Shown here one piece after another: positions 47,351 through 62,639 of a stretch of 64,000 nucleotides of DNA (positions are counted from its first letter, which is position 1; every line of letters starts with the position of its first letter). The stretch comes from Chlorokybus atmophyticus. Its lineage: Eukaryota > Plantae > Mesostigma and Chlorokybus algae. The position numbers and the translations under genes were made by a program. The stretch spans positions 286,578 to 350,577 of the forward strand of contig RHPI01002699.1 of NCBI GenBank assembly GCA_009103225.1. The letters run 5' to 3'. The notes below the pieces were generated by a model. It saw only the letters and a program-made list of their open reading frames with translations. It did no database searches and was not told where the DNA came from.

Positions 47351-48785
47351 GATTATGACATAAGAGTGTAAGATTGCCCTATGTACGCATTCTCGATGTG
47401 TGATTGTATCTATGTGTCATGTAGCAGTGTGCGTGGTTTTGCACATGCTACTTGTGCTTGTGTCTTGTATAAATTTCATTTCATGAACTTAACACTAGCA
47501 TACGTTTGGACGGCGTTCAAACATAAACCCCATAAGCAATGCTGACGCAACATTTTCCTGTATAATAAAACATACCATTAATAAAGTATCATCATGCATT
47601 ACCATATATACAACACACTATAACATCATTAGAACATACCATTAATAAGGTATCGTCATGCATTAGTATATGCCGCATTGCATACATGCGGCGGTTTTTG
47701 CGGATGCTGTTGCTTGAGATCAGCACACTTGATTCATTGCATTATAAGATTTCACTCACAGTGCAATTTAAATCATGAGATGATTGTATATATTAAAAGT
47801 TCATGATTTTGCCGTTGTTAATGATTGCGTAACTTTATATAACTACATGCATTTTATAACAGCGCTTATTAAGTTTAAAATTTTATATCGCTTGTATGTC
47901 GCGTAATTTATAAAAACAGTTTAAATAGAATAGTGTAGTGTAAATAAAGACTTAAAAGCGAGTCTGCGGCTGAAGTACCACTGTAGATGCATATTATCGG
48001 TTGAATGGTTATATAACTTATTTGAATGAAATGTAGCGTATGAACTCGATATTATAATTAATGATCTACGTTAATACAAATTGTACGGGTTCTCGTTCAT
48101 ACTTGTATTTTCTATGTGGATTGCATCCCATTAAGGTATAGCAAGTTAACATATGACTCGTGGTTGTAAATGTCATCATTTATTAATACATATACAGCAT
48201 TTGTGGTTTGTGGTTTGCAATTTTAAACACAGTCACAAACGCTTCGGTTTGCTTTATATTATCTTGTTAATATGTGTGATGTGTTTGAGCTGTGGCATTC
48301 ATATGCAAGTACTTGATGTTAAGGTATCATGTTTTTTTATATGTTTATCATTATTTATGCTGCCGCAATTTGCAGTATGCAAGCGTTGAACAGCATGCCC
48401 GTACATCAACTTTATATTTCGCAAATATCTAAATATCATCTTAAGTCCCATATGATGTCGCACATGTGGCAGCATACCATGTATATACAGGTGTATGTGG
48501 GTATATAAAGTTGTATATTATTGGCAATGTAATCCATAAAAGGCACATTGTTTTGCAAAAGATTGCAATGGATATTGCAATATGTTGCATGTACATTATT
48601 GCACATATTTTAATTCATTGTTTAAATAGGTTGCAATCAACGAAACAAGTACATTTACACGTTGCTTGGTAAACTATTGCATTATTCATGTTCGTAACCA
48701 ATTGTTGCATGTGCACCTTATCGCAGTATCATTATTTCATTCACAATATATGCATATATATGAGCTCGAGCGCTCACATGCACGC

Positions 48786-49311
48786 TGTAACAGCACCACC
48801 GTCGCCGGTGATGCCCCTTCAATCCTCTACCCCAACACCCACACCGCCTATGACAAGCCTTTCAACGGCGTGGCCGCCACTGAGCAGAGAACTGAAAGTC
48901 CCCACATCAGATTGATGTGACCTTTTATATCAAGAGTATATCAACTATATAACTCTCGATAATTAACTCACAACTAGACATCGACCCTACAGATAGGGTA
49001 GTTAGGAAATCTAGCGTGAGCCAATCACAGCTCAGATAAGGTACCTATCGATAAGGTACTTATCCAAAGATACCTATCGTAAGGTACCTAACGAGATAGT
49101 GATCACATTATATCAAATGTGACACTAAATAGGCTTGAATAAGCGGTTCTACACCCATTGGGACTTATTTAAGCTATGATAAAGCATCATAGCCTTTAAT
49201 AAGCGAGGAACCGTAGAAAAGAGGTATAAATAAGCATATTTAAATACTTATTCATACAAAATGTGTTATTCAGGTAGCAATAATACCCCTATTATTATTG
49301 CTCCCGTTACA
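48786..49311 (-). repeat. 3' LTR (526 bp)
   Basis: Matches 61594-62119 except for 2 transitions found by eye. Confidence 0.97.
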
Positions 49312-49320
49312 TTCCCCCCC
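49312..49320 (-). other. Polypurine tract (GGGGGGGAA) abutting the 3' LTR
   Basis: Plus-strand TTCCCCCCC directly after the LTR end. Confidence 0.85.
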
Positions 49321-49449
49321 ACTTAGGTTTTCAACGTCCTCGTTGAACTCAAGTTGATCNGGCTTGATTTCGAGTAATTGTAACCACTTAGGTTTTCAAC
49401 GTCCTCGTTGAACTCAAGTTGATCAGGCTTGATTTTGAGTAATTGTAAC
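49320..49449. repeat. 65-bp tandem duplication between integrase and PPT
   Basis: CACTTAGGTTTTCAACGTCCTCGTTGAACTCAAGTTGATC.. occurs twice (starts 49320 and 49385). The first copy has an N at 49360. Confidence 0.8.
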
Positions 49450-49523
49450 AAGTGAGATAGCAGGAAATGACAGGGTGGTAATGAAACTGCACTGCCAGTC
49501 TGTCATAAAACCAAGCCCACAGT

Positions 49524-52500
49524 TTATGGGACAGGACATGAATCCCAATAAGCTCGAAGCAACTCGCGGCAGTGCGCAAGATGCCTGTCGGGCTCCCAAC
49601 TGTTATGTTCCGGGCCATACCCTTTCCATTTCACCAAATAGCGAGTTGCGCGTCCTCGACCATTTAGCTTATGGTTCAATATAGCTTCCACCTCGTATTC
49701 GAGCTCGCTGTCCACCTCAACTGGCGGTGGTGGAGGCTGTGTTCTACCGTCTGAGCGGTAAGGTTTCAACAAGTTTACATGAAACACGTTGTGTATACGC
49801 ACACTTGGGGGCAATTGCAGTCGATAAGCGTGCGTACCAACTCTATCAGTGATAGAGAAAGGACCTAACCATCGGGGCAGCAACTTGCGAGCACCCGTAC
49901 CTTTGATGGTTAAGTTTTTTGCATTAAGCAAAACTTTATCGCCGACATCGAAAGTGGCCATTTTTCGATGTGTATCAGCATAAGCTTTTTGCCTGTCCTG
50001 TGCTTCTGACAGACACAGCTTGGCTCGAGCCAAATTTTCTTGCATATTAGTGGCAAATTCCTTTGCCGCTGGCACAGTCAGGGCATTGCGAGGTACACGC
50101 AATGACGCTGGTGTGTTTGGGCGAATCCCATAATTTAAGAAAAATGGGGTTTCCTTTACACTTTCTTGCCACGCGTTGTTCACAGCGAACTCTGCCATTG
50201 GCAAGTACCTGTCCCAATCAGCATGATTAGGAGCCACATAGTGGCGAAGCATTTCTTCCAGTATTTGATTTGCTCGCTCAGTTTGACCGTCCGTTTGCGG
50301 GTGGAAAGCAGTCGACATGCTTTGTTTTACCCCCAACAATTCACAGACTTCTCGCCAAAACTTGGAGACAAAACGAGGATCACGATCTGTGACAAGTTCA
50401 CGCGGTATACCGTGAACGCGAAAGACCGTGGACACAAATAAGTGTGCCAAGTCCCGTGCACTTACAGTTGTGCAACACGGGGCAAAATGCACCATTTTAG
50501 TCAAACGGTCGACAAAAACCACAATAGCAGTGTATTTAGCTGCTGTTTCAGGTAGGTCAGTAATCAAATCCATACTGACACTATCCCACTTTTGTTCTGG
50601 AATTGCTAATGGTTTAAGCAATCCCGCTTGTTTTTGTCGTAGTGGCTTATTACGTTGACACACGTCACATGTGCGAACGTATTGATCCACGTCAGCTGAC
50701 ATTGACGGCCACCAGTATAACTGTTGCGCAGATTTGAGTGTTTTGTGTTTCCCCAAATGCCCAGCATACGGCGGGTCATGCACTGAATGTAAGCATTGCT
50801 TACGCAAGTCGCCCGAGTTGGGAATTGCCAACTGCTCCCCTTTATACCACAGATTGCTAACAGCAGTAAGCTGTTGCAAGTTGGTTTGACTGCTAAACCA
50901 ATCATCTGAGTTATAACCTGTGGACACTTCCTTTAAGAAAGGATCTTCAGGCTGTTGTACATTACGCGTACTTCGAGAGCGCGTAAGTGCCAAAAGAGCA
51001 GGGCTGCGACTTAGTGGATCCGCCACATTGGTGCGACCCGGACGGTATTGCCAAGTGAAAGTGAAACGAGAAATGAATTCATTCCACCTAGCTTGCCGCC
51101 TCGACAGATTTTGTTGCGTATGAAAGAATGTGAGCGGGTTGTGATCAGTAATCACTGAAAACTCCACCCCTTCCAAGTAGCAACGCCATGTGCGCAGCGC
51201 GTGCACCACCCCGAGCAATTCCTGCTCAGTGGTTGTGTAATTACGTTCAGCAGGAATGAACTTTCTGCTTTCATATGCACATGGTCTGTCATCTTGTAGA
51301 AGGACTGCTCCACACCCAATGGTGGAAGCATCACTGATCACCACAAAAGGCTTGGTGTGGTCGGGGAAGGCTAACACAGGGGCTTGTGTTAATGCATCTT
51401 TAATGCGTGTAAAAGCAACCTCGTGTGCCTCCGTCCACACAAATTTAACATCTTTTCTTAGTAAAGATGTTAAAGAATTTGCCATGCCAGAATATGCTCA
51501 CATGAACTTGCGGAAATAATTGGCTAGCCCCAAAAAAGCACGTAACTGATGTACATCCTTGGGTGGCGGCCAATCCTTTACCGCACACACCTTTTGAGGA
51601 TCTGATTTCAATCCTTCTTTGCCAATCACATGCCCTAAAAAGGGTAGTTCATCCTTTGCAAAGTTGCATTTGGACAGGTTGGCATAGAATTTGTGTTCGC
51701 GTAACTTAGCTAGAACCAATTCCACATGCCTGTGGTGGTCCTCCCGGGTTTTGCTGAACACAATAATGTCGTCTAGATATACCAGTACAAACTTGTACAA
51801 TTCATCAGCAAATACCGCGTTCATTGCTGTCTGAAATGTAGCCGGTGCATTTGTTAACCCAAATGGTAACACTTTATACTCAAAGTGTCCTAGTGGGGTG
51901 CGAAATGCAGTTTTTTGTATATCCGACGGGTGGATTTTGATTTGATGATAACCACTGGTCAAATCCAGCGTGCTGAACACTGTTGCACCTGACAGCTTAT
52001 CAAACAAATCATCAATCCGAGGCAAAGGGTATCTGTTTTTCACAGTGACCTTGTTCAACGCACGGTAATCAATACACATGCGTAGCTTGCCATTCTTTTT
52101 GGGCACAAACAAAATTGGTGCACCAAAAGGAGATATGCTCTTTGTTATTAAACCTTTGTCCAATAACTCTTTGAGCTGTTTTTCCATCTCCGCGTGTTCT
52201 AAGGGACTTAGCCTGTATATAGGCCGCCAAGGTGGCTTTGCCCCCTCCTCTAACGGAATGGTATGATGTATGTTTCGATCGGGAGGCAACTCTGGGAGTT
52301 CATCCTGAAATACATCTGCGTATTGTTCCGTAAGTGACTGCACCACAGGGTCACTGATAGCCTGTTCAGCAGGTGTTTCCACCTGTCGTAAGTGCAGTAA
52401 GTATACTTCCTCACGTTTACGCATGCAACGTTTCAGTTGCATAGCAGAGAGGAGCGGAACATTATCGCGTGGTATACGTGCGAGTACAGATGCTGTTAAA

Positions 52501-52621
52501 GTCATCCTACGTTTCCCTTTACGAAGGGTGCACTTATTGACTCGAGAGTCTGATTGTAAACCTGCTTCAGTGTGCCATTGTTCCCCTAAAACAACATCCA
52601 CCCCGGGGATGCCCTGTAGTA
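49524..52621 (-). pseudogene. pol: pol: end of protease, RT, RNase H, integrase, chromodomain; one in-frame TGA at 51500-51498
   Basis: RT LRMCIDYRALNK and YLDDIIVFS. RNase H SDAS..ELLG..TDHNPL..ADPLSR. Integrase HHCC plus D,D,E and GPF. Chromodomain YEVEAIL..YLVKWKGYGPEHNSWEP. ORFs 52712-51498 and 51485-49524 are in the same frame (KFM*AYSGMANSLT). Confidence 0.95.
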
Positions 52622-52682
52622 AAGTGCTGCCAGGCAGCAGTGCAGCGCCGGGTGAAATCTTTAAGAGATGTGTAAATATGTA

Positions 52683-52755
52683 TGGGTACGACAGGACTCG
52701 AACCTGTGACAACTCGGTTAAAAGCCGAATGCTCTACCAACTGAGCTACATACCC
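52683..52755 (-). tRNA. trnK: Mitochondrial-type tRNA-Lys(UUU), within the NUMT
   Basis: GGGTATGTAGCTCAGTTGGTAGAGCATTCGGCTTTTAACCGAGTTGTCACAGGTTCGAGTCCTGTCGTACCCA forms a full cloverleaf with anticodon TTT. Confidence 0.95.
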
Positions 52756-53422
52756 AATGTAAAAGTTACTCCTTTCTTAGAAAAAGATATTAGATAATTG
52801 TTAGATTAATTGCTCTCTACCTTAGGTAATCGATTTGGATTCTAAAGTAATCGAAATCTATTAAGGCGCAGTGCGGAACAGCCGGTAAATTACTAATATA
52901 TTTCGATTCGGGTGATTGCTGCAGAAGATTACCCCCGCTGGACTGGGCTGCTGCAGACTGAGCTGGGCTGCTGAATCGATTCCTGCAGGCAGCCCGCTTA
53001 TGCGAGAAATCGATTACTGCAGCCCGCATCCATCCATCCTTAGATTACCCTATAATCCAACCGATTACCCCCTAATCAATAGATTATCTCGCTGCGCACC
53101 TGCAACTTGCCGATCGTTTTCGTGGTAATCCTACCACGCTGCAGTTGGTAGCTTCCTATTGTGACCATGCTTTAGAGTAAAGTAGAGTAAAATAGCAAAT
53201 TATACCATTACTGCACTTTACTAGACTGCCCTAAGCTGCAGCAGGCCGCACTTCAGCCATAAGGTTCGGGATAATCTTTTTTACGAGAGATTTTTCCTCT
53301 CTTTAGCTGAGTACCATCTTTTATGCGCGAGGCGCAGTGCGGAAACACTTAACTGTGCAATACAATTGTGTTTGGTAACCTTTATTTTCTATTAAATAAC
53401 TTAGTAATAAAAGCTCACTTTC

Positions 53423-53494
53423 TTGGAGTAAAAGGATTCGAACCTTTGCATGGCGGTATCAAAAACCGATGCCTTTCCGCTTGGCTATACTCCA
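53423..53494 (-). tRNA. trnQ: Mitochondrial-type tRNA-Gln(UUG), within the NUMT
   Basis: TGGAGTATAGCCAAGCGGAAAGGCATCGGTTTTTGATACCGCCATGCAAAGGTTCGAATCCTTTTACTCCAA, closely resembling plant mitochondrial trnQ. Confidence 0.93.
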
Positions 53495-53640
53495 ACTTTT
53501 CAGTGTTTTAAATATATAATGCTGTACTGCAGCCGCTGCAGGTAATCGTCCGATTAGAGAGCCAGATTAGATAGATAAATTACGCCGATCGAAGCCTGCC
53601 TTGCCAATTGTGCCAATCAATAGATTACCTTTACTGCTGC

Positions 53641-53686
53641 TAAGGTATTTTAATATTAAGGTATTTTAATATTAAGGTATTTTAAC
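53641..53686. repeat. 16-bp tandem repeat (TAAGGTATTTTAATAT, about 2.7 copies) in the NUMT
   Basis: Read directly from the sequence. Confidence 0.8.
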
Positions 53687-54479
53687 TTTATTTTGTTGGT
53701 TTTTAGGGGGAATTGAATTGCAGGCTGCAGTTAGGCGGGTGGTGATGCAGGGGGTAATCTACCGCACTGCGCCTACCATTTTCTGTTTCTGGTAGTTTCC
53801 TGTGTTTTATTCATAAGCACTGCACTACATTTCACTCTATTCGACCCTTTGTCCACATTAATCACAAACTTTGGTGCAACTTAGTTCGTCTACCGCCGAA
53901 ATACACTGGATGCACCGGACTTGATCGGGATATATTGCACTGGGCTAGGCCGGGCTGTACTAGACTAGACTAAATCTAACTAGAACAAACTAAATAAAAT
54001 TGCACCATTTACTGGATTGAGCTAGGCTGGGTTCCACTGCAACTGCACTGATCTGCCATATGAGAAATTGGTCTTCTACATCGACCCAGAGAAATCTGAT
54101 TGGTCATTTGATCAGTAATCTAAACAATGATCTTTGATAGAGAGTAATCTAATGATTAAAAGGGAAGCCGGCCGCACTGCGCCTGTAGCTCCTGGACTGC
54201 ATAGACTGCATAAAACGTTGAACTACTGCTGATCTTCTAGAGAGAGCAATCTAAGGATTGCTCTTTCTCCAAAATATCAGCTGAGCAAATTACCCTAATC
54301 ACTTAGATTACCGAGTGCAGCAGCCCAGTTTAGTCTAGGTGCGCAGCCAGTCGATGGCCAGATTATAGAGATAGATTAGAGATAAATTACGACAGATGGG
54401 GCGCAGTGTCCACCTAAGATAAATTACAGCAAAGAACCGAGTACTGCAGTGCTCTTCTTTTAATTTATTAATGATCCTC

Positions 54480-56093
54480 TCAGCATTGTAAAGCAAAGTA
54501 GAGTGCAGATTGGCCGCNAAAGACTAAGGGGAGTAATTTTACATAATGTGGTACGCCAAATTCAGATTCTAAGAATAGAAGATTTTTCGGTGTTTTTAAA
54601 AGAGCTGCCCCCCAGAAATCGGTTCCTAAACCAACCATCATATCTTTAGCTAAATACCCAACAAAGACACTACCAAAACCTAATAAGATTAGAGGTATAG
54701 CCATAATAATAGGAGCATCATGAGCATCTCGAACATTTTGGCGTATTCCATTATAAGGAGCTAAAAAGGTTAAAAAAAGTAATCGGAAGGAATAATAAGA
54801 GGTAAATATTACTGATACACTTCCTAACCAAAAGGCAAATCTTCCACTTATACTATATTTAGCAAAAGCAAGTTCTAAGATAAGATCTTTAGAATAGAAT
54901 CCGGTTAAGAATGGAAATCCGACTAAAGAAAGGGATCCTATTAACATCATAGTGTAAGTAAAAGGAAGTATTTGTCTTAAACCTCCCATTTTCCGCATAT
55001 CTTGTTCATCTGACATACCATGAATTACAGAGCCCGCCGTTAAAAAGAGCAAGGCTTTAAAAAATGCATGATTCATTAAATGAAAGATACTAACAGAATA
55101 GTTAGATAAGCCAGAAGCAAAAACCATGTAACCTAATTGACTACAGGTAGAATAAGCTATTACGCGTTTTAAATCATTTTGCATTACTCCAGTAGTTGCT
55201 GCAAAAAATGCAGTTAGAGCTCCCATTACAGTTACAACCACTAAAGCTAAGGGGGCATACTCAAATAAAGGGGATGATCTAGCTATCATAAATACCCCAG
55301 CAGTCACCATTGTTGCTGCGTGTATTAATGCAGACACCGGCGTTGGTCCTTCCATAGCATCTGGTAACCAAGTATGCAATCCAATCTGCGCAGATTTACC
55401 GATTGCACCTACAAATAATAGTAAACATATTGTATTAAATGCGTTTACTTCCATATTGCAAAATATAAATTTTGCTTGGTGTAAATGACCTGCTAAAGCA
55501 AAAAGAGTGGTGAAGTCCACTGTACGAAAAAGGAAGAATAATCCCATAATACCAAGAGCTAATCCAAAGTCTCCCACTCTATTTACAAGCATTGCCTTTA
55601 TTGCAGCATTATTTGCTGCTTCTCGTGTAAACCAAAAGTTAATTAAAAGATATGATGCTAATCCTACTCCTTCCCAACCAAAAAACATCTGAATAAAGTT
55701 ATCTCCGGTTACGAGGGTTAACATAAAGAATGTAAATAATGAAAGGTAGGACATAAATCGAGGTTGATGCGGATCTTCAGACATGTAAGAAATCGAATAC
55801 AAATGTACTAAGGTACTTACAAAGGTTACAACAATTAACATAACTACGGTAAGAGTATCAAAAAGAAACCCCCAAGAAGCATCAAATAGCTCAGAATCAA
55901 TCCAAGGAGCTAATTTTATATAACACGGACTTCCGGATAATGCCACCTCATAGAACGCAACAAAAGAAAAGATAGCGGATAAGGCTACACAAGTGGTTGT
56001 TATTAGTGCAGCTCCTCGATAACCGATAAATCGACCAAATAAACCAGCCAGACCACTTCCTAGCAATGGCAGAAAAACAAGTAATAAATACAT
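54480..56093 (-). pseudogene. nad5: Mitochondrial NADH dehydrogenase subunit 5, 3'-truncated (homology ends near the N at 54518)
   Basis: [13 protein letters not shown].., [48 protein letters not shown]. Open for about 525 codons in the standard code; the C-terminal part of a normal nad5 (about 670 aa) is missing. Confidence 0.95.
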
Positions 56094-56848
56094 AAGTTAT
56101 TTGCTTTTTATTTTCTCTTAATTACAATATTGTGGTTGCAGCGATCGCTGTTCAGGTCTGCTTCTTTTATTAAAACAAATCACACACGGGCTCAGTGCTG
56201 CTGCCTGTTTATCTTCGCTACAGTACAGGTAACTTAAGTTTTACCATCAACTACTGAATCAGCGCAGCAACAACGCAGCTGCGCACCTATGCAGGCGCAG
56301 TGCGGTAGATAACCCTCCTGCAGCCCAGCCCACGCAGTAAAGTAAAGTGACCGTGCTGTCTAATAAAAGTAGGATGCAGTCTGTTTCCAGACGCCAGAGC
56401 GAAGTTATTAAAATTGCATTCTCTTACCAATATGACCTACATCGAAAGGTGGCCCACTTGAGTTTAGGTGATCTAATTAAAAAGATTTATAAATTTCACC
56501 ATTTCTAAAAAGAATTTGAGAGTTACAATTCCATCTACACACTAGGTAGTAATCGTGTTAGAAAATAGATTTGATTAAAACCTCAATAAAGTAAAGCGCA
56601 ATGCTCACTCTCTTATTGTTCAGTAAAGCAGGTGCAGTTGATGGTGCAGTATGATGGGCCTTGCTTTACCTGGCAGTGCAGTGCTGTCAACATATTTTAT
56701 CGGTACACGCTGCATCTGGTAGCTTCCTAAACTTTATAGTTTCTAATGAGTTACAAAAGTGTAAAGATGTATAGCCGCTGCGGTGTTACTAGTAACTGAG
56801 CTATTTTTAGACTTGGCGTATTTGAAACCTTTCATAAATAGATTGCTT

Positions 56849-56921
56849 GAGCCGTATGCTTGGAAACAAGCACGTACGGTTCTGAGGGGGGGAAAGCTTG
56901 AAAAGGCCGACCTATCCCAAC
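56849..56921 (+). ncRNA. Group II intron 3' end (domains V-VI), within the NUMT
   Basis: GAGCCGTATGC-TTGGAAACAA-GCACGTACGGTTC (DV), then GAGGGGGG..CCTATCCCAAC (DVI ending in AC). Confidence 0.9.
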
Positions 56922-56963
56922 ACATACAGTTTTGTATCATGGGTTCGAATCCCATTTCCTCCG
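56922..56963 (+). tRNA. trnS: 3' exon of mitochondrial trnS(GCU) (intron after position 43); 5' exon not found
   Basis: ACATACAGTTTTGTATCATGGGTTCGAATCCCATTTCCTCCG corresponds to plant mitochondrial trnS(GCU) from position 44 onward and starts exactly at the intron 3' splice site. Confidence 0.8.
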
Positions 56964-57225
56964 CTTCCTAGTTTAATAGATTTCCTTTTTCGAGTTTACC
57001 TCTTGCTTAAAAGAGAGTACAGCCGCGTGACAGCACTTCTTGCAAAAGTCTTAGATACCTGTATTTACTGCAGAAGTTGCAGCGGCCGGTTTTTACCCGA
57101 GCTGCAGGAACTATAACTATACGCGCTGCAATACAGCAGCAGCAGCACTCCATTAAATAAAAGGGGGGTGTACCGGCGGCAGTGCAGTTCAGTAAGGTAC
57201 TGTCAGATCTACAATACTAAGGTGG

Positions 57226-57305
57226 TGCAGTGCAGTGCAGTGCAGTGCAGCCCAGTCCAGTCCAGTCCAGTCCAGTCCAGTGCAGCCCAGTGCAGCCCAG
57301 TGCAG
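57226..57305. repeat. Pentanucleotide arrays (GTGCA/GTCCA/GCCCA)n in the NUMT intergenic DNA
   Basis: Read directly from the sequence. An (AGCAA)n array is also present near 58022-58045. Confidence 0.75.
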
Positions 57306-58413
57306 CCGTGCAAAGATGCAAAGGTCCAATTTAATGTAATCGAGCTCCAGTCTAATGCAGCCTGTAGCAGCGCAATTTAGTTTGAGCTAGGTCAGTGTCT
57401 CCCGCAGTACAGTCCAGTCCTACCTTGCCATGAGCCTGGGTACAGTCCAGTGCAGCGCTTATCTGTGCTAGAGAGTAATCTAAGGCGCAGTGCGGATTAA
57501 GTAAGAGCAAACTAAGACTTTCTGATCTCAGTAGGCGGTAGGCGGTTGGGATACCAAGTTGCTGGTATGGTCTAGGCTGCTGCATGCAGACTGCTGCAGG
57601 CTGCTGCATGCAGTCCAGGCTGCTGCATCCATGCAGGCTGGATGCAAACCAGTGTACCAGCTAACGATTGAAAGCGAAGCCGATTGGGTTAGTAGCCGAT
57701 TTGGCAGCATAAAAANTTATATCTAACTCATCTTGACAAACTAGACCATTTATTCTTTTTATATTTCTAGAATAATAAAACATTATAACCACTTATAAGC
57801 TATTCTGTTCTTTTAACTAAACTGACTTACTATTAATGACCTTAAAAATCACAAATCCCTCTCACGCTGCAGCTGGTAGCTTCCTTGAAAAAGAGTTACC
57901 AGGAGCTGGTAAAAGCTTATGGGTAGTAAGATCTTTCTCTTTTTAAATGCACGAAAATGCAGAGAAAGATCTACTTTTATTGAGTTTTTACACTCTTTTA
58001 CTTTACAGCGTTACAAAGTTAAGCAAAGCAAAGCAAAGCAAAGCAACGGTCTCCTACCACTTTCTGGTAGCTTCCTGTATACTCGTGAAAATAGGTGAAT
58101 TAGAGAAATGAAATTGACTCCTCTTTATCAGGTAAACAGCTTACCGTTAGGGGGTGCCTCATATAACCCACACCTTATTAAACTGCAGCTTAAGAGATGA
58201 CTCTAACCTAAACCAGCTTTTAACTAACTCTTTAGAGTCTATTACAAAAAAGGATATTGACTGTTCTAACTTGTAAAGGGATTATGTCTTTTATTTCTTA
58301 CCAAGATCGGCCAACTGCAACAAGAGAATACTAGACCGCACTGCGCCTCTCTATTTGCTTTTTTTGCTGACTTGACTATACCGCTCTTTCAGCTGTGTAN
58401 AGTCTATGTAGTA

Positions 58414-59049
58414 CCACCACGATGAAGGCTGGTCGGGTTATATGGCCATTAATAACAAAACGCCCTTTACCTCTCCCATTGCATTGAGAGTGGAACCAGC
58501 AGCACGTACATATGACGTGACTGGTGTGAAAGGAATGTTATTACGTTTCACTCAAGCATGTTCAACAAAGTTATGGTTTGCACCAGTATTAATCAATGCT
58601 GTACATGGTGTACCTATAAGTTGACTCTCAAATCTCCATTTGAGTGGCACTGAGTGACCATCAAATGTAGCTAATGTCGGAGTGCCGTGATTGGTAGCAG
58701 ACTTGATAAAGATCACTTGCAATGGTGAAGCTCCTGTATCTTTGCGTGAGAGTTGCATGATTACTTCTCCCCCTTTCTACAATCGCGACCACGGGCCATC
58801 ATATCGAGGGATAACTACACATGCAGTGACAGCATGTTGTAATTGCAACTCGTGTAAGTGCTTAACAGCAGTTACTAATTCAGAGAATGGAACATTGATT
58901 AAAACACAACCGTTTGCATTTCTCAACACAGGTGGTGTGCTCATATCAGTCCATACATCTGATACATCGCAAAGAGAGGAAACTTTATCAAGAAGTACAG
59001 AGTTTTTAAAGTCGTTCTGCTCGACTAAGCTACCAACCACGGACAATTC
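58414..59049 (-). pseudogene. 5' part of pol: degenerate adenine-MTase-like segment and aspartic protease (catalytic D to N, stops, frameshift)
   Basis: In frame with gag: ..VLINVPFSELV..TACVVIPRYDGPWSRL*KG..ALINTGANHNFVEHA*VKR.., then a 1-nt shift near 58463-58465 to GRFVINGHITRPAFIVVVL. Confidence 0.8.
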
Positions 59050-60225
59050 CTATTTCTTTTCTCTCTGCTGCTTGGCCTTCTGTGCATTCTGTTTTGCATA
59101 GCACGTAGCCTCCCCATGACCTGTCTTCTTGCAGAAACTGCAAGTGATGATGGATTTGGCCGCATTGTAGGGGCCAGCAGGATGAGATGGTTTCGCCTTT
59201 TTCGCAAAAGGTTTGTTGCCAGTGGCCGGGCGCTTTGCAGCTGAAACCGGGGCTGCCTCTTTTGTCGTGGTTTGCATGTTGGCGTGAGAGCGTTTTACAC
59301 TGTCCACAGCAGCAACCATCTGCATCAGCATTGGTAAATCCGTCGAGGCCCACTCTTGCAAACTCGCGGGGTTGACGGCCACATGCTGCACGAGATCTGT
59401 GTCCAAGCCACGCCTGAACATATCCAGCTGATCAGCATCACTGATAGGTAGTTTGCCAGCATTGATCTTGCTGACAAACGACTGAAAATCCTGGATATAC
59501 TGCTGAACCGGACGCCCGTTCTGACGCAGGTTGTGCAGCTGGTTGCGAGCAACCTGGGCAGGATCTGCGCCACCATAGCGCTGCTCCATGAAAAAGCACA
59601 ACTGATTTACTTCCCGCCCGAGGTTTGTATCCCGTTGCTTACGGCGGTACCACTCTGCCAGAGCATCGTTTGGGATCAGCAACTCAGCTACACGCAATTT
59701 CCCCTCCTCAGAAATGTGAAGGGAGTTGACATAGTGTCGCAACTTCACAAGCCAGTCGAAGATGGCCGCTTGCTTGTTGGGAACAAACTCGGCAGGACGA
59801 GCAAGTGCTTGAACAGGTGGACCACCGTCAGCACGCTGCAGACGCTCGATCATATTCAGAACACGTTTACCTTCACCCATCTGCCCCTCCCAATCTCGCC
59901 CCATAAAGGTGGTGAGCTTTGAAACTTTTTCTACCAATAGGAAGAGAAAGTTCACGAATGAGACAATTGCCTCACGAGGGTCCTGATCATAGGTGCTAAG
60001 GAAATGCTCCATCAAGTCCTGCTGTGTCATGCGAATAGAAAACTCAGGGAATATAGAAGGTGATCTATCATCCACTGAAGCTTCCGCAGCTTTAGCAGCT
60101 TGAGACTCATCAGGTGCATCATCCGGATTCGGAATATCTTCCATGGATGGAAATTCCTCCTCACGGGAAAGTTGCTCTTTTTCTGAGCTCTCCCCTTTTG
60201 AGGTGGGCACCGAGTTTTCTTCCAT
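59050..60225 (-). CDS. gag: gag (retrotransposon capsid domain plus CCHC zinc knuckle)
   Basis: 391 aa: IFDWLVKL..LRQNGRPVQQYIQDF..FRRGL, and CSFCKKTGHGEATC (C-X2-C-X4-H-X4-C). Confidence 0.92.
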   Translation of the reverse strand: MEENSVPTSKGESSEKEQLSREEEFPSMEDIPNPDDAPDESQAAKAAEASVDDRSPSIFPEFSIRMTQQDLMEHFLSTYDQDPREAIVSFVNFLFLLVEKVSKLTTFMGRDWEGQMGEGKRVLNMIERLQRADGGPPVQALARPAEFVPNKQAAIFDWLVKLRHYVNSLHISEEGKLRVAELLIPNDALAEWYRRKQRDTNLGREVNQLCFFMEQRYGGADPAQVARNQLHNLRQNGRPVQQYIQDFQSFVSKINAGKLPISDADQLDMFRRGLDTDLVQHVAVNPASLQEWASTDLPMLMQMVAAVDSVKRSHANMQTTTKEAAPVSAAKRPATGNKPFAKKAKPSHPAGPYNAAKSIITCSFCKKTGHGEATCYAKQNAQKAKQQREKK

Positions 60226-60733
60226 TTGCCTGCAAAACAGGCAGAATGGGGTGGTGAGAACCTCACCAATGGACCAGGTTCAACGAGAGGATCAAAATGA
60301 CCCCAAGTTGTAAAAGTCCCAAACAGAGTCCAAACCAGTCCCAAAACAGGAAAGGTTGGATCTGGAGTGTCACCAAACAGAACAAGTCTGAGTGGGACCA
60401 GAATGTCCTAACCCAGTGTTGTCCTCCACCAAGTCCCAATCTCCAGGCCGAAGCCAGAGGGGGAGGGTTTCAGGCTAACAGGGTTTGGGAACAGATTGTC
60501 CTAGAACCTCCCCACAACTGTCCTAACCAAGTCCCGATCTCTAGGCCGAAGCCAGAGGGGGAGGGTTTGGGAACAGTTTGGTTTGGAACTTACGGACCCG
60601 GGTCAAACGACCCGGCAAAGCCGCTGGCAGGTCACAGGTACGTCACATGCATGCAACAGGCAAGCCACAGGCATGCAACAGGCAAGCCGTACGGTGACTA
60701 ACTGTGACATGCACTGGCAAGCACAATGACAAG

Positions 60734-61306
60734 CAATCACCGCATGCAATGACAGGCAATCACTGCAAGCAATGATAGTGCACTAAGTGTGACAAACAGT
60801 GATGGCACACTAGCAAGCCGCAATCACCGCATGCAATGACAGGCAATCACTGCAAGCAATGATAGTGCACTAAGTGTGACAAACAGTGATGGCACACTAG
60901 CAAGCCGCAATCACCGCATGCAATGACAGGCAATCACTGCAAGCAATGATAGTGCACTAAGTGTGACAAACAGTGATGGCACACTAGCAAGCCGCAATCA
61001 CCGCATGCAATGACAGGCAATCACTGCAAGCAATGATAGTGCACTAAGTGTGACAAACAGTGATGGCACACTAGCAAGCAGCAATCACCGCATGCAATGA
61101 CAGGCAATCACTGCAAGCAATGATAGTGCACTAAGTGTGACAAACAGTGATGGCACACTAGCAAGCCGCAATCACCGCATGCAATGACAGGCAATCACTG
61201 CAAGCAATGATAGTGCACTAAGTGTGACAAACAGTGATGGCACACTAGCAAGCCGCAATCACCGCATGCAATGACAGGCAATCACTGCAAGTAATGATAG
61301 TGCACT
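60734..61306. repeat. 87-bp tandem repeat (about 6.6 copies) in the retrotransposon 5' leader
   Basis: Units start at 60734, 60821, 60908, 60995, 61082, 61169 and 61256. They are near-identical and have no spacers. Confidence 0.95.
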
Positions 61307-61578
61307 GGCAAGCCACTGTGCGCATGAAAGTACACACGTGCACTTGGCAAGCACCTGGCAAGCAGCTGACAAGCAGGCAAGCAGGCAAGTCACCGACGTG
61401 TGATGGTACCTCACACGTGGAGAGGCCGCCTCTTTGATAGGTGGCTTCAACGTGAAGGTAGCGCAGGGAAGCGAACTTGAAGCTTGAGCTGCGTGGACGA
61501 ATAGGAGGCCGCCGCCGACGCCTTCTGATTGGCCGAAAGCAGGTCGCCGCCCCCTATAAGTACCCACGTCACCCCCCA

Positions 61579-61592
61579 GCTCCTGGATACCA
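61579..61592 (-). other. Primer-binding site, tRNA-iMet-like (TGGTATCCAGGAGC)
   Basis: Lies 1 nt inside the 5' LTR. The first 7 nt are complementary to the 3' end of plant tRNA-iMet. Confidence 0.75.
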
Positions 61593-61593
61593 A

Positions 61594-62119
61594 TGTAACA
61601 GCACCACCGTCGCCGGTGATGCCCCTTCAATCCTCTACCCCAACACCCACACCGCCTATGACAAGCCTTTCAACGGCGTGGCCGCCACTGAGCAGAGAAC
61701 TGAAAGTCCCCACATCAGATTGATGTGACCTTTTATATCAAGAGTATATCAACTATATAACTCTCGATAATTAACTCACAACTAGACATCGACCCTACAG
61801 ATAGGGTAGTTAGGAAATCTAGCGTGAGCCAATCACAGCTCAGATAAGGTACCTATCGATAAGGTACCTATCCAAAGATACCTATCGTAAGGTACCTAAC
61901 GAGATAGTGATCACATTATATCAAATGTGACACTAAATAGGCTTGAATAAGCGGTTCTACACCCATTGGGACTTATTTAAGCTATGATAAAGCATCATAG
62001 CCTTTAATAAGCGAGGAACCGTAGAAAAGAAGTATAAATAAGCATATTTAAATACTTATTCATACAAAATGTGTTATTCAGGTAGCAATAATACCCCTAT
62101 TATTATTGCTCCCGTTACA
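61594..62119 (-). repeat. 5' LTR (526 bp)
   Basis: TG..CA termini; matches 48786-49311. Confidence 0.97.
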
Positions 62120-62639
62120 CACGCATATGCACACTATTTTGTAGTACCTTACAACGCAAAGTTGTTTGCACATTTGTATGTTGTACTAATGCAATGCAAT
62201 GCATATAGTACGGATTACTTTTCATCTTTGCACACGATTGTATAAAGAACTTTTACTTTGCATTATGATATGATCGCAACATCACGATTAGACAATTCGA
62301 GCAATGATGTAATCAGCAACACAACTCACATGATGTTGCTGTATACGATAAGATATTTAGCAATTAAGGATGATGAACAACATGATATTTCCATTTATCA
62401 TTAAATTGCGCTCTTGTGATTTGCTAAATATGGATACGGTTGGTAACGTCTTGATTATAAGTGTTATTTAATTCCAACTTTTTTAGATTCTTTTAAAATT
62501 TATTTAGAAACAAAATAAATGAGAAGGGAAAAGGAAAAAGAGTTGTGGCATGACTCTTTTCCCGACGATATAAAACCTTTTGTATCGTGCAACCAGTGGA
62601 GTCAATGTAATACGAGCAGCAGTGAAATCTGGTGAACAA

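Follow-up and report, generated by a model that had tools for sequence, protein, structure and literature searches.

A 7-bp direct repeat flanks mitochondrial-type DNA in the protease region of a chromovirus from Chlorokybus atmophyticus

Introduction

The closest described comparison for the locus reported here is an Oryza catalogue of 828 polymorphic organelle-DNA insertions (NUMT/NUPT, 'NORG'; Genome Res 2025, PMC12129026). Duplications longer than 5 bp are found in 13% of these insertions and microhomology at 48% of junctions, fillers occur, and insertions above 1 kb are mostly multi-fragment; the insertions are also often associated with Ty3/gypsy elements (PMC12129026). The Chlorokybus locus appears to be of the same kind, with organelle DNA in a nuclear break, a short duplication, microhomology, a short filler and a multi-fragment insert of more than 1 kb. 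It differs in that retrotransposons split older insertions in Oryza, whereas the Chlorokybus insertion lies inside a retrotransposon. The host is moreover an early-branching streptophyte alga, and its junction classes are inferred rather than read against an empty-site allele or a donor genome. The classical end-joining model of NUMT formation (c-NHEJ and polymerase-theta alt-EJ; PMC12129026) offers further likenesses, namely the absence of transposition signals, a target site that has lost nothing, and ligated fragments that apparently come from non-adjacent mitochondrial regions. However, textbook NUMT joins are blunt or use microhomology, without duplication, and the Chlorokybus insert has the same 7 bases at both ends. 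Keeping these bases at both ends would need either the filling-in of staggered ends or templated synthesis.

LTR retrotransposons can also transduce or capture gene fragments, as maize Bs1 has done. Sequences captured in this way are common to several copies of an element and usually lack an internal flanking duplication. The Chlorokybus insert resembles such captures in that foreign DNA lies within an element with intact, near-identical LTRs, but it is known from one copy and carries a duplication typical of direct DNA insertion.

In its contents, the insert resembles the described Chlorokybus mtDNA (Turmel et al. 2007, PMC1894977). Both have nad5, trnK(uuu), trnQ(uug) and a GC content of about 40%. 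They also have in common a trnS(gcu) that a group II intron interrupts outside the anticodon loop, as well as short repeats with GGGCTGC and TGCA units, some dispersed and others in tandem. The published mtDNA has a full-length, uninterrupted nad5 and both trnS(gcu) exons, whereas the nad5 of the insert ends at codon 525 and the insert's trnS gene is represented by its 3' half only. As set out below, the locus is probably a complex NUMT that arose by break repair in an integrated chromovirus copy, with mitochondrial DNA captured by end joining.

Results

The window is the whole 64-kb stretch of DNA that was analysed. Within it, a 5,785-bp block of mitochondrial-type DNA (52622–58406) has TGTAGTA on both sides and interrupts a Ty3/gypsy chromovirus. 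The features of this host element and of the insertion site are listed in the order in which the minus-strand element is read, after the element itself and its target duplication.

48786–62119, minus strand: host element, Ty3/gypsy chromovirus (LTR pair by self-BLAST; Pfam domain order)
48781–48785 and 62120–62124: 5-bp target duplication CACGC of the host element
61594–62119, minus strand: 5' LTR, 526 bp, with TG..CA ends (self-BLAST)
Just inward of the 5' LTR: primer-binding site TGGTATCCAGGAGC (minus strand)
59050–60225, minus strand: gag ORF, 391 aa (Pfam Retrotrans_gag and zinc knuckle)
58414–58776, minus strand: protease region upstream of the insert (three-frame translation, tblastn, HMM alignment)
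58407–58413: right TGTAGTA copy (read in the sequence)
52615–52621: left TGTAGTA copy (read in the sequence)
51501–52614, minus strand: remainder of the protease, then the reverse transcriptase, both downstream of the insert (Pfam RVT_1; HMM alignment from GVDVVLG)
49524–51485, minus strand: RNase H–integrase–chromodomain ORF, 653 aa (Pfam RT_RNaseH, Integrase_H2C2, rve, SH3_Tf2-1, Chromo)
Before the 3' LTR in element orientation: polypurine tract GGGGGGGAA
48786–49311, minus strand: 3' LTR, 526 bp (self-BLAST)

The domain order is gag, protease, reverse transcriptase, RNase H, integrase and C-terminal chromodomain (Pfam, with the protease placed by homologue alignment). The chromovirus hallmarks are all present, these being the TG..CA LTR ends, the 5-bp target duplication, the primer-binding site and the polypurine tract. 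As assembled, the element measures 13,334 bp, which falls to about 7,542 bp when the insert and one repeat copy are subtracted.

A sequence-only reading of this DNA had claimed that TGTAGTA stands at both junctions and that removal of the insert restores the reading frame, and both observations hold. On removal, the minus-strand codons AFIVVV (ending at 58414) and LQGIPGVDVVLGEQW (from 52619) are reunited, and three-frame translation of the minus strand shows that the protease–reverse transcriptase frame joins only when the insert and exactly one repeat copy are deleted. The joined translation was computed locally, while the flanking halves were searched separately in search tools. Among 200,000 random cut-point pairs in the 64-kb window, a flanking direct repeat of at least 7 bases arose with a frequency of 6.5e-4, on which ground a chance origin of the 7-mer repeat was rejected. 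The repeat and the restoration of the frame are real and beyond chance.

With one repeat copy retained, 200 nt separate the catalytic-site residue of the protease from the D of GVDVVLG, which makes 67 codons after allowing for a 1-nt frameshift near 58465. The equivalent spacing in 14 homologues is 66–70 residues, as determined by HMM alignment. As the spacing is the same as in the homologues, the element apparently lost no sequence, which agrees with what had been claimed. We see what appears to be a 7-bp target duplication without element loss, deduced from the reading frame and the homologue spacing rather than by comparison with a pre-insertion allele.

The host element is young, its LTRs differing at 2 of 526 positions (99.6% identity). 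Judged by its reading frames it is not intact. The protease region has an in-frame stop (58552–58554) as well as the frameshift already mentioned, and its catalytic motif is LINTGA, in which Asn replaces the catalytic Asp (homologues carry DSGA). A further in-frame stop at 51498–51500 parts the reverse transcriptase from the RNase H–integrase ORF. These data bear on a scenario in which the retrotransposon served as a vector: mitochondrial DNA would have entered a parent copy, and the whole 13.3-kb unit would have been transcribed, reverse-transcribed by the proteins of other copies and integrated here. The scarcity of LTR differences and the intact 5-bp target duplication leave only a short time for a hit after integration, and the stops and frameshift in pol would have made the lineage dependent on helper copies anyway. 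However, no second insert-bearing copy was found. Neither gag, the 653-aa pol ORF, a junction-spanning ORF nor the protease ORFs had a match in exact look-ups, and a word search with the reverse transcriptase gave no relative above 66% identity among subjects of about 204–650 aa, a range that longer polyproteins exceed. Two rare events in succession would also be required, and the 7-bp duplication lends no support. We consider it very improbable that the insert arrived in this way.

At the left junction, the last four bases of the repeat and the first four of the insert together read AGTAAAGT, and the insert sequence that follows AGTA is AAGTGCTGCC. The motif AGTAAAGT occurs 5 times in the insert and not once in the 58 kb outside it, and AGTA precedes AAGT in 4/59 cases inside the insert versus 0/375 outside. 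Since AGTAAAGT is confined to the insert and spans the left junction, these counts suggest a microhomology of approximately 4 bp (AGTA), a reading drawn from motif statistics (likelihood ratio of about 17) and not from donor sequence. Neither insert end carries a poly(A), an LTR or a terminal inverted repeat, as read in the sequence, so a transposition mechanism is unlikely. Signatures of the end-joining type are seen here, in the form of the 7-bp duplication and the probable 4-bp microhomology, while transposition signals are absent. LINE-type (target-primed) retro-insertion of mitochondrial RNA was considered and rejected, as there is no A/T run at the insert ends and the insert contains spacer DNA and the end of an intron that was not spliced out.

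The duplication would not need an unusual staggered break if a cut-and-paste DNA transposon that makes 7-bp duplications had been excised from this site and the gap patched with mitochondrial filler DNA. Yet the insert ends hold no transposon end remnant and no inverted repeat, and this account is conjectural throughout. No transposon family that makes 7-bp duplications is known to us from the Chlorokybus genome, and we rate an excision footprint as extremely unlikely.

The features found inside the insert are as follows.

52622–54517, minus strand: block A, mitochondrial spacer contiguous with the left junction (ARAGORN, Rfam; mitochondrial-type dispersed repeats)
52682–52756: trnK(UUU), in block A (ARAGORN/Rfam)
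53422–53495: trnQ(UUG), in block A (ARAGORN/Rfam)
54519–56093, minus strand: block B, nad5 codons 1–525 of 678 (protein match; Pfam Proton_antipo_N, Proton_antipo_M)
56847–56965, plus strand: group II intron domains V–VI and 3' exon of a trnS(gcu)-type tRNA with a long variable arm (Rfam)
56966–57715: GC-rich spacer of mitochondrial type, carrying tandem repeats of 5 and 10 bp (CAGTGCAGTC) and ending at the N at 57716
57717–58399: block D, AT-rich spacer of mitochondrial type, bounded by the Ns at 57716 and 58400
58401–58406: AGTCTA, the 6 nt between the N at 58400 and the right repeat

The mitochondrial origin that had been claimed for the insert is borne out by nad5, the tRNAs, the group II intron end, a GC content of 40.7% (vs 46–50% in the host element) and repeats confined to it. 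The motif GGCGCAGTGCGG, which is dispersed, has 7 copies, all of them within the insert and one at 58336 in block D, and mitochondrial-type dispersed repeats are present in every insert block and nowhere else in the window. The repeat units of the GC-rich spacer agree with those described for Chlorokybus mtDNA (PMC1894977).

The nad5 frame, which had been described as intact, is indeed open but is truncated: it covers codons 1–525 of 678, and the match terminates exactly at the N at 54518. Codons 526–678 were sought across the whole window and not found. Of the 525 residues, 521 are identical to published Chlorokybus Nad5 (P0001), the runner-up match being 78% identical. The published gene is intron-free (PMC1894977). 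An intron at codon 525 was rejected on this ground, and also as no group II 5' consensus is seen beyond this codon and the second exon is absent from the window; a slight chance is left of an intron peculiar to the sequenced species. Of the tRNA genes, trnK(UUU) and trnQ(UUG) are present, and the trnS(gcu)-type gene is represented by its 3' exon only. Its intron domains V–VI (56847–56921) match Rfam RF00029 with 72.6 bits, the trnS(gcu) reading is based on the published positions of group II introns in Chlorokybus mitochondrial tRNA genes (PMC1894977), and a search for the 5' exon or 5' acceptor strand found none.

The sole mtDNA reference, used via its Nad5 protein, is that of strain SAG 48.80, which belongs to a different species of Chlorokybus; splits in the genus date back as far as approximately 76 Myr (PMC8611356). 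Decay was rejected as an explanation of the four Nad5 amino-acid differences, since the sites are variable and the reference protein comes from another species. An exact look-up of published Nad5 (P0001) gave no match, as did exact look-ups of eight small ORFs located in the insert or extending across the left junction. Neither a junction-proximal 31-mer nor a nad5 40-mer was found by exact-pattern scanning of metagenome contigs. A word search for short contig fragments with a 140-residue piece of nad5 gave a best match of 69% identity. No part of the window resembled human sequence.

A multi-block insert with a flanking duplication could also result from a single event of replication-based template switching (FoSTeS/MMBIR type), wherein a broken or stalled end switches by microhomology onto mitochondrial templates and then back. 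This would fit the two or more internal discontinuities of the insert, one where the nad5 match ends (54518) and one at the half trnS (56847–56965), as well as the probable microhomology at the left junction, and 27% of the Oryza insertions were assigned to this class because they show complex structure together with flanking duplication or loss. That assignment requires a duplication (TSD) >20 bp or a deletion >10 bp (PMC12129026), whereas the Chlorokybus site has 7 bp and no loss, and the discontinuities inside the insert could have been introduced in assembly. Template switching is an unlikely origin for this insert.

Chlorokybus has a single published nuclear assembly, made from short reads of total DNA with SOAPdenovo (k=85), GapCloser and Pilon (PMC7027972). 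The window contains four Ns, all within the host element, and the three that the sequence-only reading had placed at 54518, 57716 and 58400 are real and lie inside the insert, where they may conceal missing sequence. Given these Ns and the short-read assembly, the size, order, mosaic structure and apparent freshness of the insert are not secure. Mitochondrial reads presumably dominate the total-DNA data and can overwrite changes specific to a nuclear copy. The intact nad5 and tRNAs had been taken to imply a very recent event, which is plausible but weakly argued, because total-DNA short reads, which could mask nuclear changes, served for building, gap closing and polishing the assembly.

The same data raise the question of an assembly artefact, in which the element is uninterrupted, or the insertion smaller or different, and a short-read scaffolder or gap closer placed mitochondrial contigs or reads here. 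The exclusive use of short reads is compatible with this, as is the position of the Ns, one falling exactly at the end of the nad5 match and another 6 nt from the right junction, so that just 6 nt of non-element sequence lie between that N and the right repeat. ORFs that cross or flank the junctions are also not on record in independent assemblies, as judged by exact look-ups. However, mis-scaffolding does not produce the same 7 bases at two independent junctions together with exact restoration of a frame, and we infer that a chimeric path through a k=85 graph cannot come from a 7-bp overlap. The left junction has no N closer than 1.9 kb and lies in an N-free stretch of 5.2 kb, and the 6 nt before the right repeat are unlike uninterrupted element sequence. 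An artefact of this kind is distinctly unlikely.

Discussion

Capture of mitochondrial DNA by end joining accommodates what is observed at this locus, namely the repeat, the restored frame, blocks of mitochondrial origin and a young host element. In such an account, the chromovirus copy would have integrated first, and a chromosome break would then have fallen in its protease-coding region. Repair by end joining would have ligated in one or several mitochondrial DNA fragments, their number depending on the true inner structure of the insert. Staggered ends of 7 nt, subsequently filled in, would be the simplest cause of the same 7 bases at both nuclear ends, and the left nuclear end probably paired with the incoming fragment via approximately four bases (AGTA). 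This break geometry, repair pathway and order of events are inferred from the junctions and the host element. The insert itself is likely without function, and the host element would already have been non-functional or have become so soon afterwards. The claim that such a duplication is unusual for end joining does not sit well with the Oryza catalogue, given the share of insertions there with duplications >5 bp (PMC12129026).

There is a practical warning in these data. Young NUMTs in the Chlorokybus short-read assembly are joined at single Ns and were polished with what we take to be mostly mitochondrial reads, so truncations, 'half genes' and apparent freshness in such blocks are unreliable and should not be taken as biology without long reads. 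If the vector scenario were true, a helper-dependent chromovirus would have copied kilobases of organellar DNA, including tRNA genes, thereby spreading NUMTs. Under the preferred reading of break repair by end joining, the locus is one more documented entry of organelle DNA into the nucleus with a short flanking duplication, in a member of the earliest-branching streptophyte algae. As its junction signatures match those catalogued in rice, the comparison suggests that the same repair routes may be common across green plants.

The insert interrupts a defective chromovirus

A mitochondrial-type block of 5,785 bp (52622-58406) interrupts the protease region of a single LTR retrotransposon, which the combination of gag, reverse transcriptase (RT), RNase H, integrase and chromodomain in Pfam identifies as a Ty3/gypsy chromovirus.

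Table. Features of the host chromovirus (coordinates, strand, feature, basis)
48786-62119, minus: LTR retrotransposon (LTR pair and Pfam domains)
48786-49311 and 61594-62119, minus: LTRs, 526 bp each, 2 differing positions, 99.6% identical
49524-51485, minus: RNase H, integrase and chromodomain (Pfam)
51498-52712, minus: RT ORF, 404 aa, TTG start, crosses the left junction (Pfam)
~58414-58776, minus: protease, N-terminal side; the C-terminal part resumes at 52621 and below (translation and homologues)
59050-60225, minus: gag (Pfam)

The LTRs have TG...CA termini and lie next to a polypurine tract and a primer-binding site; outside them, CACGC forms a 5-bp target duplication. In-frame stops occur at 58777-58779, 58552-58554 (protease) and 51498-51500 (between RT and RNase H), there is a 1-nt frameshift in the protease near 58465, and the catalytic motif reads LINTGA, with Asn replacing the catalytic Asp of relatives. 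The chromovirus is defective even without the insert, despite its near-identical LTRs. Between gag and the 5′ LTR with its primer-binding site it also carries an 87-bp tandem array (60733-61306, 6.6 copies, 99% matches), and at 49319-49449 a tandemly duplicated 65-bp unit (96% matches) that starts within the polypurine tract beside the 3′ LTR, and whose copy number is uncertain because of an ambiguous base (N) at 49360. The surroundings (47500-48785 and 62120-62500) are AT-rich, with 31-39% GC and no ORF or Pfam signal, and are ordinary spacer as far as tested.

Removing the insert and one seven-base repeat restores the protease frame

The sequence-only reading had placed TGTAGTA at both junctions, and we confirm it at 52615-52621 and 58407-58413. 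In minus-strand translation, ..RPAFIVVV stops at 58414 and LQGIPGVDVVLGEQW.. begins at 52619; as had been proposed, the two share a frame only once the insert has been removed together with exactly one copy of the repeat. Among 200,000 random pairs of cut points in this window, flanking repeats at least 7 bases long arose in a fraction of 6.5 × 10−4. The TGTAGTA repeat is real, and not a product of chance. The further claim that no element sequence was lost was checked against relatives by searching the two sides of the insert separately. It is supported by a profile from 26 homologues, which begins aligning at GVDVVLG, directly past the junction, and by motif spacing: DSGA and D(V/I)ILG lie 66-70 residues apart in the 14 homologues carrying both, and 200 nt apart in the chromovirus with one repeat copy, or 67 codons allowing for the frameshift.

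The only published nuclear assembly (strain CCAC 0220) was built from short reads using SOAPdenovo (k=85), GapCloser and Pilon (PMC7027972). An assembly artefact, with no insertion whatsoever at the locus, is nevertheless improbable, as mis-scaffolding does not yield two junctions with a common 7 bases and a restored frame. The left junction (52621/52622) sits within 5.2 kb free of Ns, and an overlap of 7 bases should be too short for a spurious path to arise, whether at k=85 or during gap filling. Six bases immediately left of the right repeat, AGTCTA, also depart from the sequence expected for an uninterrupted element. The insertion is therefore probably real. Two chimeric ORFs cross the left junction, 51498-52712 (minus, 404 aa, TTG start) and 52423-52797 (plus, 124 aa), and fuse the flank of a mitochondrial trnK to retrotransposon sequence; look-ups found neither on record elsewhere, and they are by-products of insertion, not genes.

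Mitochondrial content and order of the insert

The mitochondrial origin first read from sequence was borne out. An ORF at 54480-56093 shares 521 of 525 residues with published Chlorokybus Nad5 (P0001, 678 aa), and the next best match in a search of 5.8 billion proteins is at 78%. The GC content of the insert is 40.7%, against 46-50% in the chromovirus, and that of the published Chlorokybus mtDNA is 39.8% (PMC1894977).

Table. RNA features and dispersed repeats of the insert (coordinates, strand where assigned, feature, basis)
52682-52756: trnK(UUU) (ARAGORN and Rfam)
53422-53495: trnQ(UUG) (ARAGORN and Rfam)
56847-56921, plus: group II intron domains V-VI (ARAGORN and Rfam)
56847-56965, plus: half tRNA gene, comprising intron domains V-VI and a trnS(gcu)-type 3′ exon
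52865, 53331, 53762, 54172, 56294, 57484 and 58336, both orientations: dispersed repeat GGCGCAGTGCGG; none in the other 58 kb of the window

The 7 copies of this 12-mer include at least one in each block of the insert, and within the window CTGGTAGCTTCC (3 copies) and AGTAAAGT (5 copies) are likewise confined to it. Two tandem units, CAGTGCAGTC and GCTGCTGCAG, are similar to repeat units described for Chlorokybus mtDNA (PMC1894977). Taken together, the Nad5 match, tRNAs, intron end, GC content and repeats indicate that the whole insert is mitochondrial in type.

The nad5 gene is not intact, contrary to the sequence-only reading: the match stops after codon 525 (base 54519), and codons 526-678 are absent from the whole 64-kb window. 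The published nad5 is intronless; the group II introns of that genome are confined to ten tRNA genes and atp9, cox1, cox2 and cox3, and its group I introns lie in cob, cox1, rns and rnl (PMC1894977). The half tRNA gene keeps its long variable arm, T arm and acceptor strand but has no anticodon, and a search of the window found no 5′ exon. In Chlorokybus mtDNA, introns lie outside the anticodon loop in just two tRNA genes, trnS(gcu) and trnI(cau) (PMC1894977); of these, the long variable arm favours trnS(gcu). The intron end and the start of nad5, which is on the opposite strand, are just 753 bp apart, too little for a full intron and 5′ exon. Given the truncated nad5 and the half trnS-type gene, the assembled insert is not colinear with normal mtDNA, and consists of at least three pieces.

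Assembly limits and the age of the insert

All four Ns in the 64-kb window fall inside the chromovirus. That at 49360 lies in register within the 65-bp duplication, 54518 is the exact base where the nad5 match ends, and 58400 lies just 6 nt short of the right junction; the fourth is at 57716. Those at 54518, 57716 and 58400, already flagged in the sequence-only reading, weigh more heavily than was assumed there. SOAPdenovo, GapCloser and Pilon would be expected to leave single Ns where contig ends fail to merge, typically where the assembly graph branches, and these four look like contig joins rather than random ambiguous bases. A young nuclear insertion of mitochondrial DNA (NUMT) would share k-mers with the far more abundant mtDNA, so that contigs would break where nuclear copy and organelle diverge, and gap filling and polishing would be dominated by mitochondrial reads. 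Each N may mark a genuine join between pieces of the insert, or a gap left open that hides sequence such as the rest of nad5. Because of this ambiguity, the 5.8-kb size and block order are provisional.

A very recent event had been deduced from the nad5 frame and tRNAs. The frame is indeed open and the tRNAs perfect, but nad5 is truncated, and since mitochondrial reads may have overwritten nuclear-specific changes, neither feature serves as a clock. The four amino-acid differences from published Nad5 were rejected as a signal of decay: all are at variable positions, and the reference mtDNA is from SAG 48.80, a different species of Chlorokybus, a genus whose lineages split up to ~76 Myr ago (PMC8611356). 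In this short-read assembly, both the inner structure and the age of the insert are provisional.

Probable capture of the insert

The capture of DNA during repair of chromosome breaks is the accepted origin of NUMTs. On inspection of both junctions, the insert ends proved to lack poly(A), as well as inverted repeats and LTRs, and transposition was therefore rejected as its source. Mitochondrial DNA would have been captured while a chromosome break in the chromovirus was repaired. Microhomology leaves a single shared copy per junction; repeats on both sides are unattainable by this route alone, so both nuclear ends must have borne the 7 bases. A staggered break with fill-in, or templated synthesis, could have given both ends TGTAGTA. 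The 8-mer AGTAAAGT straddles the left junction (52618-52625), all 5 of its occurrences in the window being in the insert, and AAGT is preceded by AGTA in 4/59 cases inside the insert versus 0/375 outside. The donor thus probably also read AGTA at the left join, with ~4 bp of microhomology there, although a likelihood ratio of ~17 is suggestive only.

It had also been raised as a possibility that the chromovirus was mobilised with the insert aboard, making the retrotransposon a vector. This idea requires further family copies bearing the same insert. Look-ups of the gag, pol and junction ORFs returned no record in assembly collections, and the closest RT relatives within the length range of the search are at most 66% identical. 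The near identity of the LTRs leaves less time for a hit on the integrated copy, and the protease stop, frameshift, Asn substitution and RT/RNase H stop would have made the chromovirus dependent on helpers regardless; neither observation speaks for mobilisation with the insert, which we consider very improbable.

Among 828 polymorphic organelle-DNA insertions in Oryza, 48% of junctions show microhomology, fillers and blunt joins also occur, and insertions >1 kb are mostly multi-fragment; the authors invoke end joining for most events and replication-based template switching for a minority (PMC12129026). A clean duplication had been called unusual for NUMT capture, a view that does not hold against the Oryza set, where target-site duplications >5 bp are found at 110 loci, or 13% (PMC12129026). 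The Chlorokybus insert matches that catalogue in every testable respect (PMC12129026). It is probably a complex NUMT of an ordinary sort, bounded by a short target duplication and lodged in a chromovirus that is young but dead: a kind of event already known, in a new instance from a distant lineage. The repeats GGCGCAGTGCGG, CTGGTAGCTTCC and AGTAAAGT are handy markers of mitochondrial-derived DNA in the Chlorokybus genome.
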